A stretch of DNA of 64,000 bases, taken from the IMG/VR virus record IMGVR_UViG_3300033145_003233, positions 248,001 through 312,000 of that record; one strand, written 5' to 3'. A program made the position numbers and the translations under genes. This document shows positions 1,519 to 58,034 of the stretch, one piece after another (positions within the stretch are counted from its first letter, which is position 1; each line of letters opens with the position of its first letter). The notes under the pieces are model-generated. The model had not been told where the DNA came from and did not search any database. It was given only the letters and a program-made list of their open reading frames with translations.

Positions 1519-1546
1519 ATTATATCACATAATTTTCACTTTTCAA
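1519..1546 (-). promoter_or_regulatory. Class 1 (sigma70-like) promoter with AAGTGAAA box
   Basis: TTGAAA-AGTGAAAATTATGTGA-TATAAT. Confidence 0.7.
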
Positions 1547-1551
1547 GTATA

Positions 1552-2637
1552 TTAAAACCACTTTTTGTAGATATTAGCATAAGTCCCATTCTCATAAAGA
1601 GTTAGAATAATCTTATCTATAGGACGTTTTAATTCACTTCCCTTAGATAGAACAAATCCATAGTATTGTTCATCAAACATACCGCCCGCCATAACAACCT
1701 TATCGGGATTGTCTTTTACATAGTTTAAGAGGATAGGATAGTCATAGACAACAGCATCTCCTCTTTCAAGCAGCAGATTATCACAGGCACTACTAATACT
1801 ATCAACTGTTTTAACTTTTGCTCCTAATTCTTTCACATATCCAACACTTGTTGTCCCTTTTTGAGTTAAGACAATTTTGCCTTTTAAATCGTCAGGGCTT
1901 TGAATATCTCCAGCTATCTTTTCCGTTGTATAATCAGCAGACAAAAGAGCAGTAAAATTACAAAAAGCCATAATCCCGCAAAAGATAAGTGCTATTGTTA
2001 TTATTTTTGTTATCCATTTCTTGGGAGTATAATCTCCATATCCAACTGTTGAGCAGGTAACAACACAGAAATAGATAGCTTCAAAAATCCCTGGGATATA
2101 TTTATTATTAATACCCTCGTCTTTCCCTCTTTCGGCAATCCATATTATATGAGAGAAGAGAAGTATAAAGAATATAAAAATACCTATAGGTCTAGACAAG
2201 GCCTCATAAAGAATAGCTCCTCTTGCAATAAAGCCACTACTGGCTTGGTTTTTCAAGACCATAATACCCAAACCAGAGTTCATAGTGGGAACAGAGAAAT
2301 CTGCCCATTCCATTCTAGCAGAACGGATTGTAAGACCTGAGCAACCCACATCTGCATTGCCATTCTTGATATTAGTTTCTATTTCATCCCATGGAACAGC
2401 ATTAAATTTCCAACTTGCAATAAGCCCTTGGGAAACCAATTCTTTTCCTATGGCATTCCATAGTTCTATTTCAAAACCTGAAATTTCTTTGGGGCCATAT
2501 TCGTTATCAGTATTAACAATTACACAGGGGGGCATATCTGAAACATAAACTTGCAAAGGCTTAAAAAAATCGTCCTGTGCCGAAACTATTTGACAACCAA
2601 CAAATAAAACCAACAAAATTACCAACGTTTTCTTCAT
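1552..2637 (-). CDS. GluR0-type ligand-gated potassium channel (SBP family 3 domain split by a two-TM K+ pore)
   Basis: Signal peptide; S1 lobe with SGLTIRSAR; TM helix; pore TCSTVGYGD (K+ filter TVGYG); TM helix; S2 lobe with GTTS, YDYP, EQYYGF, GTYANIYKKWF. Confidence 0.9.
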   Translation of the reverse strand: MKKTLVILLVLFVGCQIVSAQDDFFKPLQVYVSDMPPCVIVNTDNEYGPKEISGFEIELWNAIGKELVSQGLIASWKFNAVPWDEIETNIKNGNADVGCSGLTIRSARMEWADFSVPTMNSGLGIMVLKNQASSGFIARGAILYEALSRPIGIFIFFILLFSHIIWIAERGKDEGINNKYIPGIFEAIYFCVVTCSTVGYGDYTPKKWITKIITIALIFCGIMAFCNFTALLSADYTTEKIAGDIQSPDDLKGKIVLTQKGTTSVGYVKELGAKVKTVDSISSACDNLLLERGDAVVYDYPILLNYVKDNPDKVVMAGGMFDEQYYGFVLSKGSELKRPIDKIILTLYENGTYANIYKKWF

Positions 2638-2659
2638 AGTTTTGTCTCCTAAAAATTAA

Positions 2660-2688
2660 AGAGAGAGAGGATATTATCCCCTCTCTCC
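2660..2688 (-). terminator. Hairpin/terminator between pspA and the channel gene
   Basis: Minus strand GGGAGAGAGGGATAATATCCTCTCTCTCT followed by TTAATTTTT. Confidence 0.55.
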
Positions 2689-2728
2689 CGGTTATAACAA
2701 CGTTACAAAAGCCACACACACGACCACG

Positions 2729-3394
2729 TTATTTCTTTGCCATCAACCTTGCAACTTCATCGTCAACAGCACTATCTCCATGAGTGCCGTACTTACTTTC
2801 CATGTCTTCGATACCACCGGAGGGAGCCATCTCTTCGAAAGCTTCCGCTTCGCACTCATCCGACTCCACAGCGTCTTTAAGCTTATTAAGCTCTGAGAAG
2901 CAATTGTCCGAATCAAGCCCTTGACTTGACTTCGCAAACTCTTTTCTTGCTTCTGCCATTTGCTTACGGACTGCCAGTTGAGTATGATCGCTCTCGGCCT
3001 GACTAACCTTGTTGTTTTTGTCTTGCCATTGGCTCTTCATTCTACCAAGCATCATCTCATCCTGAGAGATCATCTTCTTAAGGCTGTCCGCCCTTTGCTG
3101 GGCCTGCGTCTTATTGGTGATACACGTCCGAACATCATCTTCCTTGCCAGCTTCTGCTGCCTTCTTAGCAAGATTAGTCCATTTCTTGATATCGGCCATT
3201 TCGGTATCAAGTTGACGCTGATTCTTTTTAATTTGTGCCGAATACTTACCAATATTGGCTTGTATCTCAGACAACTTTTTCTTAGAATCCTCAATAGCAA
3301 ACTTGCCATCGCGGATCGGATCTTCCATCGACTTCGCAGCCTTATCCTTTTTCTCACGAGCGGTATTTTTTAACATCTTCCAAAAACTTGCCAT
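2729..3394 (-). CDS. pspA: PspA/IM30 (Vipp1, ESCRT-III-like) family protein
   Basis: 221-aa coiled coil with EDPIRD..FAIED, W...AKKA.EAG.ED and C-terminal VDDEVARL. Confidence 0.85.
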   Translation of the reverse strand: MASFWKMLKNTAREKKDKAAKSMEDPIRDGKFAIEDSKKKLSEIQANIGKYSAQIKKNQRQLDTEMADIKKWTNLAKKAAEAGKEDDVRTCITNKTQAQQRADSLKKMISQDEMMLGRMKSQWQDKNNKVSQAESDHTQLAVRKQMAEARKEFAKSSQGLDSDNCFSELNKLKDAVESDECEAEAFEEMAPSGGIEDMESKYGTHGDSAVDDEVARLMAKK

Positions 3395-3439
3395 CTTTTT
3401 ATCTCCTGATTATTAAAACCTAAAAATCGTTATGGTCTC

Positions 3440-3892
3440 TTACAAAGACTCAACAAGGTGAACATCAAATAAGTTTTTCGCCGTTAAGAGCGCCGCATTT
3501 AAGCTCCTCATAGAAGCAAGAAGCTCATTTTCCGAAATATCCCCAACTGGTATGCTGTCGATTAAAACAACAGGCCACGAAGATCTGTCATCTCCCTCAC
3601 CATCAATGTCAGTTAAGACACTGAAGGCATACGGAAGTGTTTGAGAATTCATGTCCAGAAGACCAAGAAAAAAATCCTCTTGCATCTCAGTATCGACCTT
3701 CGCTATCAACTGACCCCAAGTTGCGATTTCACAACTGATAGTCAGATTGGTATTATCCATCAGGATAACACAAGGGAAAGGGGCAGTGTCACTCCCCATG
3801 GGAACAGCAACGCTATTCTCGTTAAGCTTGGGAGAAAAACCCTGAGCCTCAAGAGTGCGTTCTACGTCAACTAATGTCTTAATATCGTTCAT
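3440..3892 (-). CDS. YjfI (DUF2170)-like protein
   Basis: Size, LLDMNSQTLPYAFS motif and adjacency to PspA as in yjfI-yjfJ. Confidence 0.55.
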   Translation of the reverse strand: MNDIKTLVDVERTLEAQGFSPKLNENSVAVPMGSDTAPFPCVILMDNTNLTISCEIATWGQLIAKVDTEMQEDFFLGLLDMNSQTLPYAFSVLTDIDGEGDDRSSWPVVLIDSIPVGDISENELLASMRSLNAALLTAKNLFDVHLVESL

Positions 3893-3924
3893 CCTACTTG
3901 CTCCTAAAAATTAATTTTAATTGT

Positions 3925-4653
3925 TTACTTCCACAACTTTACATCATTTATATTGACTTTGCATCCTTGAAGAAAAGTTATAAAACTATTTTCTTCATCA
4001 ACATCAATACCTTCGGTAATCTCTGTTTCTATTTCCACATCACCGTATGCGTCCAGCTCAAGAGACTCTTCCTCATCTCTCCATTCTTGAACGTTGTTAA
4101 ATTCAAGAGTAAGTGATTCGGGATTCTCACAGTCAGATTTGGTTTCATATTCCACCACAGTTGCAAATGATTTTTCCCCATCTTCCATGCACAGACCATA
4201 TCTAGGCCCTTCAGTTACATAAACAATATCCTCATCCTGACCATCATCATTCTGGAATATTTTTTGGGAAAAAACAAGAGAAGGAAGTTCGCAATTTTCA
4301 AAGTCTGCTTTTTCAAAGACCCAATCGCTGCCACTATCCAACATATCAGCACGATTACCTTCTTCGAAATCGTCAGGGATATACATAATTTTTAGCTCAA
4401 ACTCATGCTTAATTATCTTTACAATCAAATACCATAAAATATCGCCAAATTCTATATCAAGAATAATCCATTTAATAGGAGCATCTTGACAAGTTATGAC
4501 TCTTCTTCTCTTTATGGTAAAATCAGCACCATTGGCTATATCCTTATGGCCCTCATCCATTAAAAACGATAAAGTCTGCTCATCAGATAGTTGAACTATA
4601 TCATCTATTTTTAATTGCTGCCACTGGGCCACTTTTTCTTTATCTTCTATCAT
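3925..4653 (-). CDS. Acidic hypothetical protein of the PspA operon
   Basis: ATG at 4653 after AAGGAAAAG; co-oriented within the operon. Confidence 0.6.
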   Translation of the reverse strand: MIEDKEKVAQWQQLKIDDIVQLSDEQTLSFLMDEGHKDIANGADFTIKRRRVITCQDAPIKWIILDIEFGDILWYLIVKIIKHEFELKIMYIPDDFEEGNRADMLDSGSDWVFEKADFENCELPSLVFSQKIFQNDDGQDEDIVYVTEGPRYGLCMEDGEKSFATVVEYETKSDCENPESLTLEFNNVQEWRDEEESLELDAYGDVEIETEITEGIDVDEENSFITFLQGCKVNINDVKLWK

Positions 4654-4674
4654 TGCTACTTTTCCTTTAAGATT

Positions 4675-4698
4675 GAGAGAGGGGAAAACCCCTCTCTC
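4675..4698 (-). terminator. Intra-operon hairpin
   Basis: GAGAGAGGGG-AAAA-CCCCTCTCTC inverted repeat. Confidence 0.5.
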
Positions 4699-4724
4699 GC
4701 TCATTTCTCCACAAGGAGACAAAC

Positions 4725-5375
4725 CTATGTAGACTGTTTTCGATTAGCCAAGACAATAGCAACAACGATACCGCCGACCACGAGCAAAGCCACGACTCCT
4801 AAGAGACCGTTATAGTTCCCCGGAGGACGACCGTACACATAGTTGTTGCGAGTCATCAGGGTGTTCATCATCACAGCATCCGACATGGCACTATACATCA
4901 TCCACGTACCAACGTTGTTCATATAACCATATCCACCATAACCAGAATTATAGGAAATGTTAACATTCGTATTCCCTACTCTCGTTGTTTGGGGGATATG
5001 ACTTGGACGGGAAGCTGGCTGTTTGGTATACTTAGAAGTATACTTAGCTGAGTTCTTACTCTTGAACGCGGCTGTCGCTTCAGACTTGCTCTTGAATGCC
5101 GTTCCATTCTTTTTAGCTGTCTCGAATGACTTTTTTGAAACAGCACTTCTTTTTGGAGCAGTTTTAGCACGACCTGTTGATGCTTTCCTCTTCGTCTGAG
5201 TTTTCGCCCTGTTGCTACTCCTATTACTACTTTTATTACTACTCCTGGCGCCACTTCTGCTGCCACCTCTGCTGCCTCCACCTCTACTGCCTCCTCTTGC
5301 AAAAACATCACTCATGCTTGCAAGAAGGAAGATTGCTGCCACCGACAGCACTACCAACCATCTAAATTTCTTCAT
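4725..5375 (-). CDS. Secreted/membrane-anchored protein with an RGG/Ser/Lys-rich region and C-terminal TM helix
   Basis: Signal peptide MKKFRWLVVLSVAAIFLLASMSDVFA, RGGSRGGGSRGGSRSG repeat, C-terminal LLGVVALLVVGGIVVAIVLA; SD AAGGAG. Confidence 0.7.
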   Translation of the reverse strand: MKKFRWLVVLSVAAIFLLASMSDVFARGGSRGGGSRGGSRSGARSSNKSSNRSSNRAKTQTKRKASTGRAKTAPKRSAVSKKSFETAKKNGTAFKSKSEATAAFKSKNSAKYTSKYTKQPASRPSHIPQTTRVGNTNVNISYNSGYGGYGYMNNVGTWMMYSAMSDAVMMNTLMTRNNYVYGRPPGNYNGLLGVVALLVVGGIVVAIVLANRKQST

Positions 5376-5428
5376 CGTTTGTCTCCTTTCAAGAAACATT
5401 ACAAAAATCATTTAAGATTTAAAAATGC

Positions 5429-5456
5429 ATTATACAAAATATACTTTCACTTTCAA
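5429..5456 (-). promoter_or_regulatory. Class 1 promoter driving the PspA/channel operon
   Basis: TTGAAA-GTGAAAGTATATTTTG-TATAAT. Confidence 0.75.
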
Positions 5457-5523: not shown

Positions 5524-5781
5524 TCACTTATCTTTCTTAGCTGGCCCCTTTTTTACCTCTCCTTTTCCCACTTTTTTATCTAATTCGTAGTTCTTATCTT
5601 TTCTATAATCAGTAGCATAAAAGCCACTTCCCTTAAAAATTATACCCGATCCTGCTCCAATTAAACGATTAAGTTTTAATTTCTTGCATTTAGGGCATTT
5701 CTTAAGAACACGACTAGACATCTTTTGAAATTTCTCGAATTGATGATTACAAGCAGAGCATAAATAATCATAAGTAGGAAT
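5524..5781 (-). CDS. FmdB-family zinc ribbon protein with non-canonical ATT start
   Basis: IPTYDYLCSACNHQFEKFQKMSSRVLKKCPKC...GAGSGIIFKGSGFYATDYR; SD AAGGAG 7 nt upstream of ATT at 5781. Confidence 0.8.
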   Translation of the reverse strand: MPTYDYLCSACNHQFEKFQKMSSRVLKKCPKCKKLKLNRLIGAGSGIIFKGSGFYATDYRKDKNYELDKKVGKGEVKKGPAKKDK

Positions 5782-5785
5782 TTTC

Positions 5786-6589
5786 TTGCTCCTTAATAAA
5801 GGTTTTTTACAATTTATTCATAATATAGAATATGTGGAAACAGTAATAAAAGAAAAAATCATTAATATCTATAAAAACAATTTCAACAAAACAATTGTAG
5901 ATATTGCTTCTCAATTTAAAGTTAGCCGTAATACTATTTATAGAGCATTGGAAAAAAATAGAATAGATAAAAATCTGTTAAAATTTGACCATAATTTTTT
6001 CTCTTCCATTAATTCCGAAAAAAGCGCCTACTGGCTCGGTTTTATATTCGCAGATGGGTGCATATGTGATTCACACGGAACTACAAAATCCCTAAATATC
6101 CATTTATCTACTAAAGACGAATTACATCTTAAAGCATTTCAAAAAGATATTAAATCCAGATTAAAAATACATCTTGTAAAAGAAAAAGACAAAAACTCGG
6201 TTTATTGCAGATATTATTCTAATAAATTATGCGAAGATCTTATAAGACTAGGCTGCGTGCCAAGAAAAAGCACTATTTTGAATTTTCCCGACATCCCACC
6301 GCTTCTGCATCGACATTTTATCAGAGGATATATAGATGGAGATGGATGTATTTGTCTAAGAAAAAATGGCCTAAGAAAAAATTTACAGATAGGAATTATA
6401 GGAACTGAGCAGTTTTTATCTTCTCTACAATCTTTATTTTTCAAAGAGCTAAATATTAATCACAAAAAACTTCAGAATAAGGGCAGAGTTAAAAGTTTAA
6501 CCATTAATGGTAACAAGCAATGCCTCCGATTAATAAAATGGCTATATCAAGATAGCACAATATATCTTGCTAGGAAGTGCATAATATAA
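5786..6589 (+). mobile_element. Free-standing LAGLIDADG homing endonuclease with N-terminal HTH
   Basis: AYWLGFIFADGCI and RHFIRGYIDGDGCI motifs; opposite strand to its neighbours; real start may be GTG at 5834. Confidence 0.9.
5800..5824 (+). promoter_or_regulatory. Class 2 (sigmaH-like) promoter
   Basis: AGGT-N17-TAAT upstream of the LAGLIDADG coding region. Confidence 0.5.
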
Positions 6590-6603: not shown

Positions 6604-7182
6604 TTACTCTATTTTTCCTATTTTCGAATAATAGTATAGAATTCCCCAAGCCTTAGCTCCAACCTTCTTCCCCGAACCTAATAGCTTATTAATGTCGTCT
6701 ATATCATAAAACAACACTTCTATATCCTCACTATCTTCTTGATCAGTATAACTAATTTCTCCCGCTGCCTTTGCAAACACAATAACACATGATTCATCAC
6801 AAATACCAGGAGAAGAATAAATAGGGCAACTTACATCTGTAATTTCTGTAATATCTAGACCAGTCTCTTCCTTCAATTCTTTAATAGCGGTTTCTGCTAT
6901 ATCTTGCCCCTCTTCTATCAATCCAGCAGGGAATCCATATTCACATCCTCCAATAGCGACTCTATACTCTTTTGTAATAACAAGTCTTCTACCAGTAGGA
7001 GTATCTACAATAGGAGCAATAACAACAGCATCAACACTTGGATCTGCAATAGGATGTTCTTTTCTGGAAACAAAAGTCCATTCTACAGTATTTAATTTAG
7101 CATTAATATATTTCACAAAAAATAAATTAATCCATTTGTTATCTGTAAGTTTTTTAAGTTGTAATATTTTTCTCAAGTTCAT
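6604..7182 (-). CDS. NUDIX hydrolase (ADP-ribose pyrophosphatase-like)
   Basis: Nudix box PAGLIEEGQDIAETAIKELKEETGL; YSSPG. Confidence 0.9.
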   Translation of the reverse strand: MNLRKILQLKKLTDNKWINLFFVKYINAKLNTVEWTFVSRKEHPIADPSVDAVVIAPIVDTPTGRRLVITKEYRVAIGGCEYGFPAGLIEEGQDIAETAIKELKEETGLDITEITDVSCPIYSSPGICDESCVIVFAKAAGEISYTDQEDSEDIEVLFYDIDDINKLLGSGKKVGAKAWGILYYYSKIGKIE

Positions 7183-8489
7183 CTGTCCATTTCTTCCAAT
7201 AACTTTTTATAACGATTTCTATAGTTAGCACTCAAGTGATCTATCTTTTCAGATAACATTATCTCAAATAATTCATCTGGATCAAAATTAGCTAACTTGG
7301 CAAGACCAAGAATCAAGAGAGGAGTAGGAGTGTAGCTCCCTCCTTCGCTTCTTGCCACATTAGAAACACTCACATTTACCTCCTTACATAAAGATAGCTG
7401 ACTTTTCCCTATTGAGGTTCTTTTATTTTTTATATAAGCAGACGTTTTTTTAAAATTCCATCCTATTCCCTTAGAAGTTCCCTCATCAAAACGGAAGGCC
7501 CACCCTCTATTATCTTTCAATTCTCCCTTTTTATATTTATCAAATACTATTCTATGTTTATAATCATACCATCTTACCCTATCAGATAAAACCATCTCAT
7601 AAATAGGCTCTAAATTTAAAAATAAAGAATTACATAATCTATATATCATCATTTGGCCAGGCAGATTCCATGAAAGACAGATACTCCTTATAAGATGAGG
7701 ATGAACTCCTATCAACTTTGACTGCTCTCCGTATGTTAATCCTCGAATTGCTTCTAAGTAAAATACAGAAAAATCAGATTGAAATTCTTCATCCCTCAAT
7801 AATACTGTGTGAGGACAAGAAACATTATCTCTATGATAAGATTTAATTAATTTTATAACTTCATCTTTATCATCTTGCTTCTCCCTGTAATACTCCATAT
7901 ATTCAGCCACTTTTTTTTCTGCATGAGCCACATAGCATTTTATCTTCTCTAATAATTGCATATGAAAGAGATCATATGGGTTAATCTTCAAACATTTAGA
8001 TATAGCAAAAATCTTCTTTAAAGGTAAACTTTTTCTACCAGCTTCTATAGATAAAAGTTCCCTCCTCTCCATCCCCATTATCTTGAGAAAATTTATTATA
8101 GTCAGAGATTGCTCAACTCTCCTATTATGTATATATCTCCCAGTTTTTTTTAATTTTAATGAAACTTTACCTCGAGAATTAGAAGTAGAAAAAAAGATAC
8201 AATTATAAGGGTTCTTGCTAAAATCTCCCTTCTTTTTATAATCCTTATAAAAAAGAACATTCTCTTTAGCAAATCTTTTAGACCATTCTATTATAATAGA
8301 TTGGCAAAAAGATGGCGGATCAATACCCATAGCTTGTGCTATGTGAAAAGCCTTATGAATAGAAGGGATGATCTCTCCTTTTTCTGTCCTCAATATAACA
8401 TCAGGATGAACTCCAGATATCTTAAAAAGATCTTTAAGTGTCCATCCCTTAGAGATTCTTTGAGAACGTACTAGTTCGGCTACATTCAT
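7179..8489 (-). CDS. Transcriptional regulator with multiple XRE-type HTH repeats
   Basis: Repeated XRE-like segments (VRSQRISKGWTLKDL..., IHNRRVEQSLT..., IKNKRTSIGKSQLSL...E.G). Confidence 0.7.
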   Translation of the reverse strand: MNVAELVRSQRISKGWTLKDLFKISGVHPDVILRTEKGEIIPSIHKAFHIAQAMGIDPPSFCQSIIIEWSKRFAKENVLFYKDYKKKGDFSKNPYNCIFFSTSNSRGKVSLKLKKTGRYIHNRRVEQSLTIINFLKIMGMERRELLSIEAGRKSLPLKKIFAISKCLKINPYDLFHMQLLEKIKCYVAHAEKKVAEYMEYYREKQDDKDEVIKLIKSYHRDNVSCPHTVLLRDEEFQSDFSVFYLEAIRGLTYGEQSKLIGVHPHLIRSICLSWNLPGQMMIYRLCNSLFLNLEPIYEMVLSDRVRWYDYKHRIVFDKYKKGELKDNRGWAFRFDEGTSKGIGWNFKKTSAYIKNKRTSIGKSQLSLCKEVNVSVSNVARSEGGSYTPTPLLILGLAKLANFDPDELFEIMLSEKIDHLSANYRNRYKKLLEEMDR

Positions 8490-9085
8490 CTGCTAACAAA
8501 ATCCTCAACAACATATCCATTTTCATCTACATAGTTTTTAATTCTTCCCGCCATGTTATTAATAATTTGTCTAATTCTCTCTCTACTATAATCCAATACA
8601 TCTGCTATTTCAACCATTTCCATTCGTTGCTCATAATAATAATATTTGATTTGCTCTTCTAATGGGCTTAATTCAATTCTGTCAAACAAAAACTCTAAAT
8701 CTCCCCACTCAACAAATGGCTTATATTTCTCTCGTATAGGGCGATAATGGTATCCATATTCTTCTTCGCTTTCTCCAGCAAATTCAAAACCCATTATTTT
8801 AAATCTATCTTCCCACCTACTACGTAAATCTATATAGATAGAGAACCCTGTTCTAAAAGCAAATTTTGCATAGGTAGAAAATTTCACACCCCTAGACGGA
8901 TCATATTTCTCAGCGGCCATACACAAAAACCATATTAAATGACCAGCAACATCATCAATTTCGGGAGGCCTTATTTTTCCGCGATTTAATAACGTTTTTA
9001 TATACCACCATACCAAATTGATATTATCAGCAGCTAGTTGTTTTTGTTCTTCCGTTAAATAATGTTGTCCATAGGGTCTTCCCAT
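8486..9085 (-). CDS. Sigma-70 family RNA polymerase sigma factor
   Basis: DNINLV, KYDPSRGVKFSTYA (region 2); EIADVLDYSRERIRQI (region 4). Confidence 0.85.
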   Translation of the reverse strand: MGRPYGQHYLTEEQKQLAADNINLVWWYIKTLLNRGKIRPPEIDDVAGHLIWFLCMAAEKYDPSRGVKFSTYAKFAFRTGFSIYIDLRSRWEDRFKIMGFEFAGESEEEYGYHYRPIREKYKPFVEWGDLEFLFDRIELSPLEEQIKYYYYEQRMEMVEIADVLDYSRERIRQIINNMAGRIKNYVDENGYVVEDFVSR

Positions 9086-9091
9086 TTCATC

Positions 9092-9664
9092 CTAATCTCT
9101 TATATAAAAATCATTTTTCAATAAACTCCGCGACCTTATAATCCTTCTTAGCTTATTCAGCATCTCCATTATAATTTGCTGAATTCTTCTCCCACTAAGA
9201 TCATATTTCTTTCCCAGTTTTTCCTGAGAAATCTTATGAGAATAATATTCTATCAATATCTTTTTATCTCTTTCTTTAGCATTTATGCCATCAAGAAGTT
9301 CATATAGAAAATCTTTTTTAACCTCTGTTTTTTTAGCATCCTGAACAACACTTTCCTCAAGATAACGAATGTGGGATGAAGAACAAAAATTATATCTATC
9401 AAATTTTTCTTTCTCTTTCCCATAAATTTGTGCTATGCTTTTATTAAACCCCCAATAAGCATAAGTAGAGAACTTAGTTCCATAATCTTCATCATATTTC
9501 GAGGCAGATATACAAAAATTCAAACAAAGATCACTAATTAAATCATCCTTCAAATGAGGAAATATAAATTCTTTTTTCCTCAAATCCGAAATAAAACCTG
9601 TTAACAATCTAATATTATTAGTTACTAATTTCTGTTGTTTTTTTGTTAATCTCGTTCTGCTCAT
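9092..9664 (-). CDS. Sigma-70 family RNA polymerase sigma factor (paralog)
   Basis: KYDEDYGTKFSTYA; SQEKLGKKYDLSGRRIQQI. Confidence 0.8.
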   Translation of the reverse strand: MSRTRLTKKQQKLVTNNIRLLTGFISDLRKKEFIFPHLKDDLISDLCLNFCISASKYDEDYGTKFSTYAYWGFNKSIAQIYGKEKEKFDRYNFCSSSHIRYLEESVVQDAKKTEVKKDFLYELLDGINAKERDKKILIEYYSHKISQEKLGKKYDLSGRRIQQIIMEMLNKLRRIIRSRSLLKNDFYIRD

Positions 9665-23791: not shown

Positions 23792-24048
23792 TATTTAACC
23801 ATCACTTTCTTTACTCTTAAGCTTTCTATAAAATGCTCCATACCATTAGGAACATTATATTTACCCTCTCTTGGATTATTCCCAAAAATTACTTTAAAAT
23901 AATTCACAGGCATAGAAATAATAGCTCTTAATCTCTTTGTTCCACCATATAAAATAGTACAATTCCATAAACTACAAAATTCTGCCAATGTAGTCATAGA
24001 TATTTTATAAGGGAAAATAAGATCTAATTCTATAAGAACTCTTATCAT
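23791..24048 (-). CDS. Hypothetical protein
   Basis: ORF track; translationally coupled. Confidence 0.5.
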   Translation of the reverse strand: MIRVLIELDLIFPYKISMTTLAEFCSLWNCTILYGGTKRLRAIISMPVNYFKVIFGNNPREGKYNVPNGMEHFIESLRVKKVMVK

Positions 24049-25055
24049 TTTATTTTTTCAGTTAAAAAATCTATAATTTCCACATCATCTAATATATTTA
24101 TTTCTGACTCCCATATATATATTATATGATATCCATATTTTTCAGCATTTAATCTTTTTTTATCATCTCTTTTCCATATTTCTGATGCCAACTTATATCC
24201 ACCTGGATAATTTATTGCATCTTCCTTTTTATATAATAGAGGATTAGCATGCCAATAATCTCCATTAACCTCAATAATTATTTTTGATTTATTTATTTTA
24301 AAATCATAACTTTTTCTATTAATCCAAAACTGCCATACATAAGAAATATTCAACCACATCAAAGCTTTAGACACTCTAGTTTCTAATTTACTTTTAAAAA
24401 AATAAGATAAATTCTTACATCTTTTTTGTATTATCTCATTTTTTTGCTCATCTGTTAATGCTTTCCAATATCTTTTATAACCATCATTCATTGCTTTCAC
24501 GCGTTGCAGTTTTTCTTCTTTTGTTTTTCCATCCCAATATTTTTGTGTATTACCATATCTATTTGGTAAAGATTTTTTACCATATTTTGTCTTCATATAA
24601 TTATGTAACCACTGATAATATTCTTTGCTTTTCCAAATATTATCTACTCCATAATTCTTTATAAATGTTTCTTTCTTTTTGTCTTTTATGCTTTTTACTT
24701 TCGATACATTATCAACTCCATACTTTTTAATACATGTTTTTTTATATTTTTTTGCCCTACTATCTAAAGCATTAGATGTCCCTATGTCTCTTTTCTTAAT
24801 TTTAAAATAATCTAATAAAAATATAGTTTGATTATAGTTTAATTCATATTCTTTTTTAAAATCTGGAAGACTATATTTCTTAACGAGATATAGGTCTTCC
24901 ATCTCAGATTTAGTGAAATTATATTTCGTAATAAAACATATTTGTTTAAATTTTATTTCTTTTCTATCTAAATTTAACTCATTTTTATTTGCACAAAAAT
25001 AAATATGCCTACCATTTTGAGGTTTTATTTTTTGTTGACATACAAAACATTCCAT
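24045..25055 (-). mobile_element. Putative homing endonuclease (DUF559/Vsr-like catalytic domain, KYGVDN repeats)
   Basis: SKLE...YDF...IIEVNGDYWH...RD..K; TCIKKYGVDN and TFIKNYGVDN repeats; very low GC. Confidence 0.75.
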
Positions 25056-32404: not shown

Positions 32405-33547
32405 CTATTCTTCTTGAAAATCAATCGATTTAGAAATAGTAAAATATACATAGGACCCCTTATCTTTTTCTGAATCTATCCATATCTTACCCCCATGGGC
32501 TTCTACTATCCTTTTACAAAGTGCTAACCCTATCCCTGTACCAGGATATTCTTCCCTAGAATATAATCTTTTAAAGATACCGAATACCCTGTCCATATAT
32601 TTAGAATCTATCCCTAAGCCATTATCTTTAACATAAAACAGCCAGCACGAATCTTCATCACAACAACCTATCCTGATAAAAGGAGATTCCTTGGACCTAA
32701 ATTTTAATGCATTACTAATTAAATTATGTAATAATTGTTTAATTCTAAAACGAATACCAAGGATGTGTGGCAAATCACCCTCCACAATAATTTTTGCACT
32801 GGACTCCCGAATCTTCACCTCAAAATCCATCATTGTTTCTTCTAACAAGTCATTTAAATTGATGGTCTCAAATGGCTTATCCCTTCTCCCTACTCGTGAA
32901 AAATCAAGTAGCTCTTCTATAAGTGTCTTCATTCTTATAGTGGCATCAATAATATAAAGAAAATACTTTTCAGCATCTTGATCTTCATCATATAAAGACT
33001 CACCTTTTTTCCTTTTCTCTGTAAGCAACTGACAATAACTAGAGACCACTCTTAATGGCTCCTGTAAATCATGAGAAGCGACATACGCAAATTCTTCAAG
33101 TTCCTGATTGCTTTGTCGCAAGGCATCTGCCGTTTCTTCCAATGTTCTACCATCCCTTATCCTTTCAGTAGCGTCCTGTTGAAAACCTACAAACCCTATT
33201 GTTTCGTCCTTATCGTTTTTTAACGGAGAAACAGTGAGGTCCATTAAAAAAATATCTCCATTTTTACGTTTATTTTTTAATAACCCCTTCCACGTTCCCC
33301 CATTATTAATTACCCTGGAGATACCATGTTGTATCTCATCTTTATTTACCTCCGCATTTAATATGCCAGGATGTTCCCCTAGTAATTCTTTTCTATCAAA
33401 ACCATATAAATTTTCCGATGCCTTATTGATGTATACTATACTTTGGTCTAAATTTGTAACAATAACAGATTCATGCATCTGCTCCATGACTGCCTTAAAA
33501 AACCATATTTCCTTATAAAAATTTTTATTTATAATATTCTTGTTCAT
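32405..33547 (-). CDS. PAS-domain sensor histidine kinase (Cph1-like HisKA-HATPase)
   Basis: PAS/PAC; FAYVASHDLQEPLR; NLISNALKF; DNGLG; GTGIGLA. Confidence 0.95.
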   Translation of the reverse strand: MNKNIINKNFYKEIWFFKAVMEQMHESVIVTNLDQSIVYINKASENLYGFDRKELLGEHPGILNAEVNKDEIQHGISRVINNGGTWKGLLKNKRKNGDIFLMDLTVSPLKNDKDETIGFVGFQQDATERIRDGRTLEETADALRQSNQELEEFAYVASHDLQEPLRVVSSYCQLLTEKRKKGESLYDEDQDAEKYFLYIIDATIRMKTLIEELLDFSRVGRRDKPFETINLNDLLEETMMDFEVKIRESSAKIIVEGDLPHILGIRFRIKQLLHNLISNALKFRSKESPFIRIGCCDEDSCWLFYVKDNGLGIDSKYMDRVFGIFKRLYSREEYPGTGIGLALCKRIVEAHGGKIWIDSEKDKGSYVYFTISKSIDFQEE

Positions 33548-41117: not shown

Positions 41118-43643
41118 TTATACCTCCGCCACAATCAAAGATAAAACAGCAGTATCTTCTATCATGTCAAAAACTTCTTTCCTAAGTTTTTCTTTATTAT
41201 CTGGATTCCATATAATCCTAACTTGAGTACCCTTGATATCATCTACTTTTCCATATTCTTGAGGATTAGCCATCCCCTTCCTTCTGTCTCTTACCCTCAT
41301 ACCTACTTGATATTGAGGAAGAGCTTCTTTCGGACCTTTCACAATTTCTGTTTTATCTTGATATAACTTATCAATAGCCTCCGGTAAAACTTGTGACAAT
41401 TTTACTTGCTTAAACCAATTCCCTGACATTAGCGGCTCCCTATATTTATTAATTATTTCTGGGGCCATCGCATGGACGGCCTGAGTAGCTTGAACTTTAG
41501 AATTCTCAAAAACATTTTGTTTCTCATTCCCGTCTGGCATAGTAGCAAAACTCATATCAATCTTGCCAGTATCTTGAAGCTCTTTAAGTCTATTTAATAC
41601 TTCTTTTATATAACCAGTAGAAGGACTTAAAACAGGAGTAAGAGTAGAAAATATATTTATTATATCACTTCCATTTATCACTGTTCCTCGAAATATCCCA
41701 GTTGGACTTTCTACAAAATTACTAAAATTTTCAAAGAATTTAGTATGTTTTTCTTCATTATAATTATCTGGTTGAGATGCCATATCATCAGCTTGAACAT
41801 GATACAAAACGTACTTCCATAAGTCTTTATGTTCTTCATCTTTACCATGCATTCTTGTATCTCTTAAAAATCTACCCCTACCTTTAGGCCCCCACTTATC
41901 AGCAGAATGAGGACGCATATGTAATCTTATAACCTGATTAACTATATCTCTCTCATCTCTACCAACACCAATAGATTTAAGGATCTGATTTGCCATCTTA
42001 GTAGATGCTCTCTCGTGATCTATATATTGCATCTGTTCCACATTCTTAGGATGAGGCTTCTGCACACCACCTTTCATCTTTCCAAAATCATGAAATAAAG
42101 CAGCAAGATTCATAAGGCCCCTCATATGATCACTTTCTCCATTATCTTGCATTATCTTATTCATATTTTTTACAACTTCTAAAGTATGATCTAATAAATT
42201 ATATTTATGATAAGGAGTTTGTTGATTCATCATTATACCTTCAGGATGCAAATCATCCATTTCAGGAACTTTAAATGCTGACTTATATAAACCAGTACTA
42301 AATAATAATTTAAGAGAATCAACTGGATTTCCCATTAACATCTTCATTAATTCTGGTCCAGCTCTTTCAGAAGCTACCTTCTTACTATATGATTCATGAA
42401 TAGAAGGATCTCCCATTGCCTTAACAATAGAATCATCAATTACGCTATTAGGAAAACGACTATGAAAACGCAAAACTCTCAAAAGCCTAAGAGGATCTTC
42501 ATGAAAAGTTTTATATGATTCATCTGGAGTTCTTAAAACTATTTGACCATCTCCCTCTATCCCCAAATCTTTTTTCCCGCCAACAAAATCATCTACCTCA
42601 CCTGTATCTATATTATAATAAAGAGCATTGATAGTTAAATCTCTTCTTCTAACATCTTCCTTGGGATTATTTGTAGTAGTAATTTGTGGTTGACGACTAT
42701 TGGGATCAGGATAATGCTCTGTTCTCATTGGAACAAATTCTATTTTTTGGCCGAATAAATCAACTGCTCCAACCATCAACTTATCATCAGGAGCTTTCTC
42801 TAATGGATCAGCAGATTTCTCCAAACTTACCTTATATGCTTTAGAAACATCAATTATATTATGCCTAACGGCTGCTTCAGCAACTAATTGAGCGAAATCA
42901 TAACCAGGCATATCAATAGCTATATCTATGTCATCACTAGGTATCCCCAATAACTTATCTCTCACCCATCCACCAGCTACTCTCATTTGAATATTAAGCC
43001 CGTGTCCTTTTTTAACTGTCTTTAAAAACTCAAATATGTTTTTCTCCTTAGGAGTAAGAGATAATTCAGAATGACCCCCGATTACTCTCTGCCCCTTTTT
43101 AAAAACCTTCTTCCCAGTAGTAGATAATCTAGAAGTAGGAAAAGAGAGACCAGGAACACTATTAGAAACCAAACACTCCACACCGATATCAAATTCTTCT
43201 ACTATATTTTTAACCGAGTCAAAAGATCCCATAGCAGCAGGCTCATTAACAATAATTCTTATAAGAGAATCAGATATATCTAACTCTTCTGCAAAGTTTA
43301 GTTGCAATCCCCCAAAGCGACTCTTTTCAGCCCCTGTTTTTTGAGAATCTAGTACTAAAAATATAGAATACTCTTTAAAATATTTATCAGCAAACCTCTG
43401 AGAAAACAGAGGAATAGGACTAAAAAAAGATATCTTATTCTTAATTAAAAAACCTCTTAAGTCTATAATATCACAAGGAAAAACCATATGTCTTGTAGGC
43501 AAGAAAGCAGCAAGGTCATCAATTAATCTGTCCGAACAATCAGCCACATAGGAAAATAATGACCTAAATCTTTGCAAACAGGATAAAATAACATCCTTAT
43601 CCACGTTTATTGGATCTCCTCTTATTTCTCGAACAACCCCCAC
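41118..43643 (-). CDS. cca: CCA tRNA nucleotidyltransferase with HD domain and N-/C-terminal extensions
   Basis: GGWVRD, DDIDIA, RRDLTINA, DPLRLLR, ERAGPEL, LFHDFGK. Confidence 0.9.
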   Translation of the reverse strand: MGVVREIRGDPINVDKDVILSCLQRFRSLFSYVADCSDRLIDDLAAFLPTRHMVFPCDIIDLRGFLIKNKISFFSPIPLFSQRFADKYFKEYSIFLVLDSQKTGAEKSRFGGLQLNFAEELDISDSLIRIIVNEPAAMGSFDSVKNIVEEFDIGVECLVSNSVPGLSFPTSRLSTTGKKVFKKGQRVIGGHSELSLTPKEKNIFEFLKTVKKGHGLNIQMRVAGGWVRDKLLGIPSDDIDIAIDMPGYDFAQLVAEAAVRHNIIDVSKAYKVSLEKSADPLEKAPDDKLMVGAVDLFGQKIEFVPMRTEHYPDPNSRQPQITTTNNPKEDVRRRDLTINALYYNIDTGEVDDFVGGKKDLGIEGDGQIVLRTPDESYKTFHEDPLRLLRVLRFHSRFPNSVIDDSIVKAMGDPSIHESYSKKVASERAGPELMKMLMGNPVDSLKLLFSTGLYKSAFKVPEMDDLHPEGIMMNQQTPYHKYNLLDHTLEVVKNMNKIMQDNGESDHMRGLMNLAALFHDFGKMKGGVQKPHPKNVEQMQYIDHERASTKMANQILKSIGVGRDERDIVNQVIRLHMRPHSADKWGPKGRGRFLRDTRMHGKDEEHKDLWKYVLYHVQADDMASQPDNYNEEKHTKFFENFSNFVESPTGIFRGTVINGSDIINIFSTLTPVLSPSTGYIKEVLNRLKELQDTGKIDMSFATMPDGNEKQNVFENSKVQATQAVHAMAPEIINKYREPLMSGNWFKQVKLSQVLPEAIDKLYQDKTEIVKGPKEALPQYQVGMRVRDRRKGMANPQEYGKVDDIKGTQVRIIWNPDNKEKLRKEVFDMIEDTAVLSLIVAEV

Positions 43644-56370: not shown

Positions 56371-57147
56371 TCATTTTATCAACCATCCTATAATCCTAGA
56401 TATCCACCCTGGTTTTTGGTCAACTTTTGATTTATTATTCTGAGTATTAAGCAATCCTCCTTGATTGTTCACTTCAGAGTTGCCACCGGATTGAGTGTTA
56501 TTTCCTTTTGATCCGATAATGTTATTATTAACAAAATTTGCTTCCATTGTTACCCCATCTTTCTTTAGTCTTAATTCAGGCAAATTTTCTATTTTATACT
56601 TGTCCTGAATTTCTATAATATACGTATTTAATTTTTCTCTGAACCCCCGTTCTATCGATTCTAAATGCCACAGAGTATATTCCACCATCCAATTTGGCAT
56701 CCCTTCATAAAATACAAAATTTGACAGGCCAAATTCTTTGCGTTCTTCATCACTAACTTCCTTAAGTACTTCAAGCAGACCAGTATTTTTTTTAACACTC
56801 CTGCATATTTCACTTATAGTTAAGGTACATTCCCATTCCTCAAATACATGATACTTCCGAAACCCATTATACTCCCATCCACCGCCTTGACCGAATAAAA
56901 AAATACCACAATCACAATTCTTTAATTTTCTATAATAAGAACCAAATTTAGAAATATCTCCTGCCTCATATCCTTTGATCTCCTTCTCTATCCACTTAAC
57001 TAGATTTTTATTACAGATCTTAAGAAAAATCTTTCGAGCAAGAAAACTTAATTTTACAGTATCTTCTCCATTTAATAGCCCCTCCTCAATTCGATTAATC
57101 GATTTTATTATTTTATCTTTCATTTCATTATACCAGATTATTTTCAC
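56371..57147 (-). CDS. AbiTii-like domain protein
   Basis: LAR.I...WIEKEIKGY...YYRKL. Confidence 0.5.
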   Translation of the reverse strand: MKIIWYNEMKDKIIKSINRIEEGLLNGEDTVKLSFLARKIFLKICNKNLVKWIEKEIKGYEAGDISKFGSYYRKLKNCDCGIFLFGQGGGWEYNGFRKYHVFEEWECTLTISEICRSVKKNTGLLEVLKEVSDEERKEFGLSNFVFYEGMPNWMVEYTLWHLESIERGFREKLNTYIIEIQDKYKIENLPELRLKKDGVTMEANFVNNNIIGSKGNNTQSGGNSEVNNQGGLLNTQNNKSKVDQKPGWISRIIGWLIK

Positions 57148-58034
57148 TTTTCAATTACAAAATACTGACCATTTGATCTATTGAAACCTACAATATCTTG
57201 TTTATATAAATCGGCAACACAATTCTGCAAACTAATATGAGAGCTAGTGTGCTCAGATCTTGTAAGTAACAACAAATTATTAATATAATTATTTAAAGTA
57301 TCTCCGTCTATATGATGGACACACTCGTTAATAAATAGCTTCCTTCCAATTTTTAACTCCATTAACGCTACATGATAATTTTTTGTAATCCACTTCCCAT
57401 TATTGTTTTTATAAGCATATTTATAATAGTAACTATTCGTCCTTTTATAATGAATTTTATAAAGCTTATTGACATTTAAATTATATTCATTATGATCTAA
57501 AAATGAAACAGTTTCGTTCAAAACATATTTTTTATTTACTCTATCAAACCATATCTTTTCACCAAATAAATCATAACCGATTTTTTCCGTTTGATGATGA
57601 CACCTACTATGATCTCCGTTTAAATTAAATAAATATAAATTAAATATTTCATTATTTATTTTATTAAAATCAATATGATGAATTCTCTCTTCTTTATTTA
57701 ATTTTCTACCAAGATGTTGCTCCATTACATATTGATGTTCAAAACATTTCCTACCGTTATCAACAGTAAGCAATCTATATCCCCCATTATGCAATCCATG
57801 TTTAAAATTCTTATTTTTTTCGCCCCTAGGTCTTTTCCCGCTATATTTTAGCAATTGAGAACAAGAGAGACATAAATCAATTTCATTATTCCTATTTAAA
57901 CGTCCTTTTTTAACAACATCTAAACGAGATTCTTTTTTAACTCCACATTCTTCACACTTTATTACACATATCGTTCTATACTGTTTTTTGTTATTTTTAC
58001 CAACTATTTCTTTTTTAAATGTTCTTATAACCAT
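57144..58034 (-). mobile_element. HNH homing endonuclease (two HNH domains)
   Basis: EHQYVMEQHLGRKL..EERIHHIDFNKINN; YHVALMELKIGRKL...VHHIDGDTLNN..NL.LLTRSEH. Confidence 0.88.

Follow-up and report, generated by a model that had tools for sequence, protein, structure and literature searches.

A PspA module with a predicted GluR0-type potassium channel, kept under a phage promoter in a lineage of phage-like contigs

Results

Layout of the cassette

The window, that is the whole stretch of DNA analysed here, comprises 64,000 nucleotides (positions 248,001 to 312,000) of the 547,943-bp IMG/VR contig IMGVR_UViG_3300033145_003233. Five co-oriented open reading frames (ORFs) occupy the minus strand at window 1552-5375 in the order g1-g2-g3-g4-g5 (Table 1), where g4 encodes PspA, g5 encodes a channel of the GluR0 type and g1 to g3 encode partner proteins of PspA modules. 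In the phage lineage to which this cassette belongs, a cellular PspA module in trimmed form has been retained behind a phage promoter, along with a channel whose pore and ligand site are intact. The original prediction, which was made from the letters of the window, had described five co-oriented genes behind one promoter of a recurrent class, and all of the ORFs and the promoter are present on the minus strand as it had described them. The start of g1 is most likely ATG 5375, which has GGAG 8 nt ahead of it, and not 5411. The start of g2 is probably ATG 4653, as in its homologues, and the listed TTG 4722 is probably wrong.

Table 1. Genes and regulatory features of the cassette, in window positions
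Feature	Position	Strand	Description	Basis
g1	4725..5375	-	216 aa; membrane-anchored basic RGG/Ser/Lys-rich protein	translation and alignments
g2	3925..4653	-	242 aa; acidic (pI 4.1) beta-rich cytoplasmic protein	alignments
g3	3440..3892	-	150-aa acidic protein, directly upstream of pspA; predicted CesT/Tir/YbjN chaperone fold	
g4	2729..3394	-	221 aa; PspA/IM30 (ESCRT-III-like)	Pfam PF04012
g5	1552..2637	-	361 aa; GluR0-type: signal peptide, S1, M1, P-loop (TVGYG), M2, S2	
Cassette promoter	5429..5456	-	TTGAAAGTGAAAGTATATTTTGTATAAT; sigma-70-like -35/-10 hexamers, 16-nt spacer, extended GTGAAA motif	
Downstream promoter	1519..1546	-	same class; marks the downstream boundary of the cassette	
g1-g2 spacer hairpin	4674..4699	-	perfect 10-bp GC-rich stem, arms GAGAGAGGGG/CCCCTCTCTC; no T-run	
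pspA-channel spacer hairpin	2648..2689	-	terminator-like hairpin and T-run; 14-bp stem (2689-2659); spacer 91 nt	

The cassette promoter (TTGAAA-N16-TATAAT) agrees with the consensus at 11 of 12 positions and is the top sigma-70-type match in the first 9 kb of the window. Five exact copies of TTGAAA-N16-TATAAT occur in the window, all on the coding (minus) strand, compared with 0.08 expected by chance. All five carry the extended motif TTGAAA(A)GTGAAA, and a sixth copy has one mismatch. Among the related loci, which are numbered with the letter L in this text, L003, L004 and L006 have kept the promoter upstream of g1 at the same distance from the ribosome-binding site. The next copy begins 6 bases past the stop codon of the channel gene. 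Because this copy directly follows the cassette, the five genes form a bracketed unit.

Two hairpins lie between genes of the cassette. The hairpin of the g1-g2 spacer folds at -30 kcal/mol (z -3.9). It is found in this genome only; in L003, g1 directly adjoins g2 and there is no such hairpin. A genome-wide repeat family built on the GAGAGAGGGG arms was considered and rejected, as the arms are present only at the two hairpins of the cassette, and their count at this pattern length is no more than chance. The hairpin between pspA and the channel gene, which the original prediction does not mention, has counterparts followed by a U-run in the same spacer of L003, L004, L006, L009 and L036 (z -3.6 to -5.6), in which the position is kept and the stem sequences are unrelated. 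The spacer of the window itself folds at a z of just -1.9. Conservation of the structure by position while its sequence changes argues for a function of this hairpin. It is probably an attenuator or partial terminator, which would give much PspA and little channel. Since a conserved terminator-like hairpin precedes the channel gene, the five genes are probably expressed unequally.

g5 has the layout of a GluR0-type channel

Pfam searches with g5 gave SBP_bac_3 (E 7.8e-23, residues 34-361) and, inside this span, Ion_trans_2 (E 4.1e-14, residues 154-232), and the SBP_bac_3 span also holds matches to Lig_chan and Lig_chan-Glu_bd. Among PDB entries g5 is matched best by 2pyy, which is the ligand-binding domain of a GluR0 homologue from Nostoc (E 1.5e-32). 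It aligns in two pieces, S1 (residues 27-132) and S2 (residues 239-361), which flank the pore insert, and full-length AMPA receptors align over residues 65-361. The hydropathy profile contains one signal segment and two transmembrane (TM) helices around the TVGYG loop, with no additional TM segment. The layout is therefore that of GluR0, with a ligand-binding domain split around a two-TM pore and no third TM.

The amino-acid-binding Arg of g5 (R108) lies within GLTIRSAR. R108, D299, T103 and the GTTS motif align with the counterpart ligand-binding residues of 2pyy. In the channel tree, the channels of the window-lineage contigs fall into one clade of 49 rows (SH-aLRT 96). STVG and the last Gly of the filter (G201) are present in 47/47 channels of the clade, and the filter Tyr is Tyr in 43 and Phe in 4. 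R108 and D299 are also present in 47/47, and T103 and GTTS are nearly invariant. The invariance of STVG[YF]G, R108 and D299 in 47 diverged channels suggests that the functional residues are under purifying selection. The sequence of g5 predicts a K+ channel whose gate responds to amino acids outside the cell. The GluR0-type channel with a TVGYG filter and a ligand-binding Arg, as first proposed, thus holds in the domain searches, in the match to 2pyy and in the invariant residues.

g4 is PspA

A search with PF04012 assigned g4 to the PspA/IM30 family over its full length (62.6 bits with a cut-off of 33.9, E 5.4e-17; residues 7-220 on positions 5-217 of the 220-position profile), in agreement with the identity that had been proposed for it. 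The conserved motifs DPxRDGKxAIED at the N-terminus and VDDEVAKLM at the C-terminus are present. The score against the NCBIfam PspA equivalog TIGR02977 is 52.6 bits, far under the cut-off of 242.95, and no pspB, pspC or pspF was found near g4. The C-terminal peptide, VD(D/M)E(V/L)(A/Q)(K/R)(L/M)M, is common to the phage and cellular members and is a candidate docking site for the CesT-fold protein g3. In the PspA tree g4 is placed among the cellular PspAs of the same module, and the PspAs of the window lineage form one clade (SH-aLRT 99).

Partner proteins g1, g2 and g3

None of g1, g2 and g3 matched Pfam, PHROG or NCBIfam. g1 has a pI of 11.3 and two hydrophobic segments. It begins with a signal/TM segment, which is followed by an RGG/Ser/Lys-rich region and a conserved GGYGY...GTWMMY...RNNYYY block, and it ends in a TM segment; residues 27-190 contain 31 Lys/Arg and 3 Asp/Glu. 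With a signal/TM segment at the N-terminus and a TM segment at the C-terminus, g1 is predicted to have its middle domain outside the cytoplasm. In cellular PspA modules the first gene is a homologue of g1 (hhalign E 1e-33, L014).

g2 is likewise homologous to a gene of the cellular module (hhalign E 1.7e-24, L014), and its family, of 399 representative clusters, is without a Pfam model. The AlphaFold model of g2 is beta-rich (pLDDT 95.9), and a fold search of PDB with it gave no meaningful match. Leads from language-model and structure searches of the Atlas point to DUF2491/DUF4178 (0.89; TM-score 0.58-0.63) and come from the model of a neighbouring cluster. Only one of 84 family members matches DUF4178, and weakly (E 0.006), and hhalign of g2 with E. 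coli YjfK found nothing. g2 is possibly a distant relative of DUF4178/DUF2491 in the position of YjfK. The RGG-rich and acidic proteins seen in the original prediction are present as described; they are, additionally, conserved members of the cellular module and not accessory unknowns.

The model of g3 (pLDDT 85) was matched by Foldseek with probability 1.0 to YbjN (6vu7), ExsC (3kxy), SigE and SicP (TM-score 0.5-0.65) and to further secretion chaperones of class I. A structure search of the ESM Atlas placed a DUF2170 cluster nearest (TM-score 0.74/0.82), with DUF2170 and YbjN clusters at 0.73-0.83. The YbjN profile matches 5/21 relatives of g3 weakly. DUF2170 (PF09938) does not match g3 at E up to 10 and matches 0/21 relatives, hhalign of g3 with E. 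coli YjfI gave a probability below 1%, and a sequence search of PDB with the g3 profile gave no match. In its fold and in its place directly upstream of pspA, g3 agrees with the CesT/Tir/YbjN chaperone superfamily, and it stands where YjfI stands in the CesT/Tir-PspA dyad. The earlier description of g3 as YjfI-like is therefore kept for fold and gene position only and is not extended to the DUF2170 family. Comparison of g1, g2, g3 and PspA with E. coli YjfM, YjfK, YjfI and YjfJ by BLASTP and hhalign, using thin and then deeper profiles, found nothing, and homology of g1-g4 to the E. coli Yjf proteins themselves is without support from these comparisons.

Conservation in phage-like contigs

The cassette is linked in 11/12 phage-like contigs whose context was examined. 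The order g1-g2-g3-PspA-channel was found in L003, L004, L006, L008, L009, L036, L038 and L080, of which L003 and L004 are IMG/VR contigs of 351 and 298 kb. In these two contigs identity to the cassette is 76-78% for PspA, 67-81% for g3, 65-67% for the channel and 45-50% for g1 and g2. The channel of L009 is 42% identical to g5, and across the relatives identity drops to 36-47% for PspA and to about 28% for the channel (about 28-44%). L036 and L080 have an extra DUF350/YjfL gene in front of the cassette. The PspA and channel trees both recover the same phage lineage as a well supported clade. This neighbourhood comparison agrees with the phage setting that had been proposed. The combination is conserved in related huge phages, where its absence would, by the original prediction's own criterion, have refuted it.

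An alignment-based scan of IMG/VR for the channel gave just 5 full-length GluR0-type channels, and 5/5 lie beside a PspA module. The other 36 matches are short pore-only K+ channels without PspA. Among GenBank phages, tblastn with PspA found no relative. GenBank phage records contain no full-length relative of g5, and one record weakly matches the ligand-binding half.

Variants of the cassette were also observed. In L008, a 6.7-kb contig that was binned as a Clostridiales metagenome-assembled genome (MAG), an acyl-carrier-protein (PP-binding) gene (3828-4091) lies between pspA and the channel gene; this contig resembles a piece of a phage genome more than it does cellular DNA. In L081 (4795-5270) and L082 (3060-3740), two or three small ORFs (68-83 aa) are present in place of g3. 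The g3 profile did not detect them, and they may either derive from g3 by splitting or decay or be unrelated to it.

Cellular counterparts of the module

When 185,579 species genomes were scanned with the PspA alignment, 15 related loci were obtained, and their ORFs were then searched with hidden Markov models. The loci belong to Lentisphaerota, Poribacteria, Thermodesulfobacteriota, Planctomycetota and Pseudomonadota. The g1-g2-g3-PspA unit is present in cellular MAGs of Lentisphaerota, Desulfobacterota, Planctomycetota and Pseudomonadota. The full four-gene module was found in L016, L022, L023, L024 and L025, g1 and g2 are fused in L020 and L027, and five cellular loci contain the g3-PspA dyad alone. 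L014, which was reached via a distant relative of g3, is a short contig with cellular housekeeping genes and g1-g2-g3-PspA.

K+ channels adjoin the module in three cellular loci. The channel is of the RCK type in L014, where it is divergently transcribed, and in L019, where it directly follows PspA, and it is of the GluR0 type in L016. Together with published operons (PMC11237479), these loci bear out the statement of the original prediction that cellular YjfI-YjfJ loci can be linked to K+ channels. The operon of L016 (Victivallales) contains, in this order, a GluR0-type channel, an unnamed gene, DUF350, g1, g2, g3 and PspA, and it is neighboured by genes for a GH42 beta-galactosidase and lacto-N-biose phosphorylase. 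The whole combination including the GluR0-type channel therefore exists in cells. In the channel tree the channels of L016, L036 and L038 fall outside the clade of the window's channel.

A further cellular GluR0-type channel, 35% identical to g5, lies among ABC-transporter and heat-shock genes of L012. This locus is Ga0366840_1000005, a clearly cellular contig of 312 kb from metagenome 3300033145, the phage's own metagenome. The organism of L012 is possibly a community member or a host candidate.

Source contig and composition

All window ORFs of at least 120 aa, except four, lie on one strand, and GC skew is negative throughout. Coding density is 85% under code 11 and stops of the TAA, TAG and TGA types are all in use, so that stop-codon reassignment was rejected. 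The large ORFs are mostly orphans. Genes of the type found in large phages include those for sigma-factor-like proteins, a multi-HTH regulator, a NUDIX protein, LAGLIDADG and HNH homing endonucleases, a DNA methyltransferase, a CCA-adding enzyme, topoisomerase I, a clamp loader and thymidylate synthase, and the PHROG matches include phage replication genes. A megablast search with the first 12 kb of the window gave no match. A Shine-Dalgarno-like motif precedes 38/73 ORFs, compared with a background of 15%. Frequent motifs of this kind and promoters of the TTGAAA/TATAAT type speak against Bacteroidota, so a Bacteroidota host, as for the Lak and Jug phages, is unlikely.

No other 3.8-kb stretch of the window is as rich in GC as the cassette (0.399; window mean 0.339, sd 0.017), whose GC is above that of its flanks in every relative too. 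This excess fits acquisition from cells. Within the cassette GC3 is uneven, with 0.42-0.48 in g1, g3 and g4 and 0.28-0.29 in g2 and g5 (window GC 0.34), which may reflect differing acquisition times or codon constraints.

Discussion

The cassette is best filed as a phage variant of the cellular CesT/Tir-PspA operon family, in which a GluR0-type channel replaces the RCK-type channel of some cellular modules. In the operons that Ravi et al. 2024 described (PMC11237479), a CesT/Tir-PspA dyad forms the core, and the other genes encode DUF350, a lipoprotein, DUF4178 or DUF2491, enzymes of polyamine metabolism and a K+ channel of the 'intracellular ligand sensing' kind. Like the cassette, the operons of their groups 2 and 3 pair PspA with a chaperone and have a beta-rich cytoplasmic protein at the DUF4178/DUF2491 position; both also include a partner that is secreted or lipid-anchored, a linked K+ channel and, optionally, DUF350/YjfL. 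Unlike those operons, the cassette is without polyamine-metabolism genes and, in the window's lineage, DUF350, and it is driven by a phage promoter. Its g2 and g3 fall outside the Pfam models DUF2491, DUF4178 and DUF2170, and its channel is of the GluR0 type and predicted to be gated from outside, whereas the channel of Ravi et al. senses an intracellular ligand. E. coli PspABC and the cassette share an effector of the PspA/IM30 family, but g4 has no PspB, PspC or PspF partners and belongs to the YjfJ-like branch with a CesT-fold partner.

The GluR0 channel of Synechocystis is K+-conducting and rescues E. coli deficient in K+ uptake; it also has an effect on the volume response to a KCl shock (PMC13099474). 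g5 resembles the GluR0 proteins of Synechocystis and Nostoc in its S1-M1-P-M2-S2 arrangement, the TVGYG filter, the ligand-binding Arg and Asp and the absence of a third TM. It differs from them in being phage-encoded and fixed beside a PspA module, and it is 35-36% identical to the nearest clearly cellular homologues found. In a survey of viral transport genes, phage K+ channels were small and pore-only, and glutamate-receptor-like genes were found in chloroviruses only (PMC6163359). g5 has a virus-encoded and predicted K+-selective pore in common with chlorovirus Kcv and the small two-TM phage channels, and predicted ligand gating in common with the chlorovirus glutamate-receptor-like proteins. 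Phage channels known so far consist of the pore only and have about 117-259 aa, whereas g5 has 361 aa and a ligand-binding domain.

That huge phages carry PspA is already known. Yuan & Chen reported pspA in 184 huge phages and 667 IMG/VR genomes, with high-confidence PspA-encoding IMG/VR phage genomes of up to 548 kb, and they described the neighbour of phage pspA as a 'two-TM substrate-binding transporter', with no mention of potassium and without calling this neighbour a channel (bioRxiv 10.64898/2026.10.24.761521). The window's contig is probably among their genomes. In Jug phages, a pspA-like gene lies beside terD and not beside a channel (PMC12880540). These phages and the present one have in common a PspA in a large genome, often beside membrane proteins; the two reports contain no GluR0-type identification, no g1-g3, no cellular source operon and no internal hairpin. 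What our sequence comparisons add is the predicted ligand-gated K+ channel as the neighbour, g1-g3 as parts of the module, the cellular origin and the conserved internal hairpin. The supposition that the gene combination had not been described in a phage holds for the identity of the channel, which was unreported, and does not hold for a phage PspA with a two-TM neighbour, which is in the 2026 preprint.

PspA is an ESCRT-III-like protein that binds and remodels stressed membranes and repairs or seals them, and it counteracts loss of the proton-motive force. We consider with moderate confidence that the cassette is a trimmed phage-borne envelope-stress operon of the YjfI-YjfJ type, which would combine membrane stabilisation with control of K+ and the membrane potential during infection. 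In this proposal, g3 as a CesT-fold chaperone would hold or deliver PspA, and PspA would work with the acidic g2 and with the membrane-anchored g1, which would face outside the cytoplasm. PspA would assemble on the cytoplasmic membrane of the host and seal or stabilise it during the long infection of a 548-kb phage. g5, which would be made in smaller amounts because of the terminator-like hairpin in front of its gene, would add a K+-selective conductance opened by amino acids at its external domain. This conductance could hold the membrane potential near the K+ equilibrium potential and support turgor and the K+ supply. A membrane that is kept tight together with a K+ conductance is, on our analysis, the most likely role of the cassette.

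Several observations weigh against this proposal. The closest clearly cellular GluR0 homologues (L011 and L012, 35-36% identity) have no PspA nearby, and in L013, a phage-like contig, the channel stands alone without the PspA module. Since L011, L012 and L013 carry it unlinked, the channel can work without the module. The ungrouped channels of L016, L036 and L038 and the unlinked channels of L011 and L012 also indicate that the pairing of PspA with the channel arose repeatedly or was reshuffled. The chaperone g3 is dispensable, as small ORFs replace it in L081 and L082. The hairpin behind pspA could end most transcription ahead of the channel gene. No capsid, terminase or other virion gene was found among the window ORFs scanned. 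The phage status of the window rests on the IMG/VR classification and the gene content; as the window is without a virion gene, this status is likely but indirect.

The lack of virion genes, with the excess of GC over the window and the flanks that suggests a foreign origin, would also suit a cassette that is a passenger, either captured recently from cells and without a role in the phage or lying on a cellular or mis-assembled contig. We regard this as very unlikely. The cassette and its phage-type promoter have been kept although PspA has diverged to 36-47% and the channel to about 28-44% identity, the functional residues are invariant and the PspA and channel trees are congruent. This conservation over deep divergence weakens the case for a passenger. 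The one-strand gene layout, the orphan ORFs, the homing endonucleases and the PHROG matches to phage replication genes also stand against it, and the contig is in IMG/VR, for which the preprint reports a high-confidence PspA-encoding phage of 548 kb. The cassette might also be directed at competitors or host defence, shielding the cell from depolarising abortive-infection effectors or blocking the entry of superinfecting DNA. Many abortive-infection effectors are membrane pores, PspA is known to act against loss of the proton-motive force, and the position of the cassette among regulatory and replication genes behind a sigma-70-like promoter fits early expression. The PADLOC models were not matched by the five proteins beyond coiled-coil noise: PspA gave only weak coiled-coil matches to JetC and LmuB (E 3e-4 to 4e-3) and the other four gave none. 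Cellular genomes hold the module in ordinary metabolic neighbourhoods, from which its basic role is taken to be physiological, and a defensive purpose is in our view unlikely.

The channel might instead be a sensor or timer, in which external amino acids gate the K+ flux and so tune the tempo of infection or the time of lysis, while PspA buffers the resulting membrane stress. The intact external ligand-binding domain, with Arg108 and Asp299 invariant and Thr103 and GTTS nearly so, agrees with such a function, and lysing neighbours or a nutrient-rich gut lumen are candidate sources of amino acids. All channels of the phage lineage are also of the ligand-gated type and carry the sensor outside, and two cellular modules differ from them in using RCK channels, whose sensor is internal. 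However, the cellular operon of Victivallales uses a GluR0-type channel too, so external gating is not an invention of the phage. Amino acids are probably always present in the likely habitats and would therefore be a poor signal, and no link to lysis genes was found within the window. A sensor or timer is thus rather improbable, and membrane stabilisation with a K+ conductance remains our preferred explanation.

To our knowledge, no function has been assigned to YjfJ-type PspA operons. PspA/ESCRT-III proteins and bacterial K+ channels are well characterised in structure, but little is understood of what they do physiologically. The cassette, which is compact, self-contained and conserved and has a defined promoter, could serve as a minimal system for the role of the module, for the way in which a virus manages the membrane of its host and for the frequent linkage of PspA to K+ channels. 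As far as the searched libraries show, g5 is the first GluR0-type ligand-gated channel recognised in a bacteriophage. If the module keeps hosts energised or resists depolarising defences, it would partly explain the very long infection cycles of huge phages. A bolder idea, which we hold to be doubtful, is that huge phages have repeatedly recruited the PspA module and an outside-gated K+ channel, and thereby couple the membrane potential and K+ of the host to the amino acids around it. If true, the virus would run a 'resting-potential' system of its own, equipped with an external sensor and used to set the tempo of infection or to withstand depolarising defences. Behind the recurrent pairing of PspA with two K+ channel types that are unrelated to each other, in cells as well as phages, there would then stand a general, hitherto unexplained coupling of ESCRT-III-like repair with K+ conductance.

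Neighbouring genes and other features of the window

Just upstream of the cassette promoter, window 5524-5721 (-) encodes a 65-aa FmdB-type CxxC zinc-ribbon protein, whose gene is syntenic with the Zn_ribbon_8 gene of L006. The LAGLIDADG gene at 5786-6589 (+), also just upstream of the cassette promoter region, belongs to the small number of ORFs that run the other way. Two further endonuclease genes, one for another homing endonuclease and one for an HNH endonuclease, lie elsewhere in the window (24045-25055 (-) and 57144-58034 (-)). The 436-aa protein of 7179-8489 (-) has several Cro/C1-type HTH domains (HTH_3, HTH_31) at both ends.

Also just upstream of the cassette are a sigma-70-like gene with regions 2 and 4 at 8486-9085 (-) and its neighbour at 9092-9664 (-). 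The syntenic region of L006 (2148-3333) contains two adjoining Sigma70_r4 genes. A promoter copy, TTGAAAGTGAAAGT...TATAAT, is located at 9700-9673 ahead of the sigma-70-like genes of the window. These phage sigma factors may or may not be the readers of the cassette promoter.

No tRNA genes were found in the window. The 841-aa protein of 41118-43643 (-) has a tRNA nucleotidyltransferase (CCA-adding) core inside a far longer polypeptide. A complete sensor histidine kinase with PAS, HisKA and HATPase_c domains is encoded at 32405-33547 (-).

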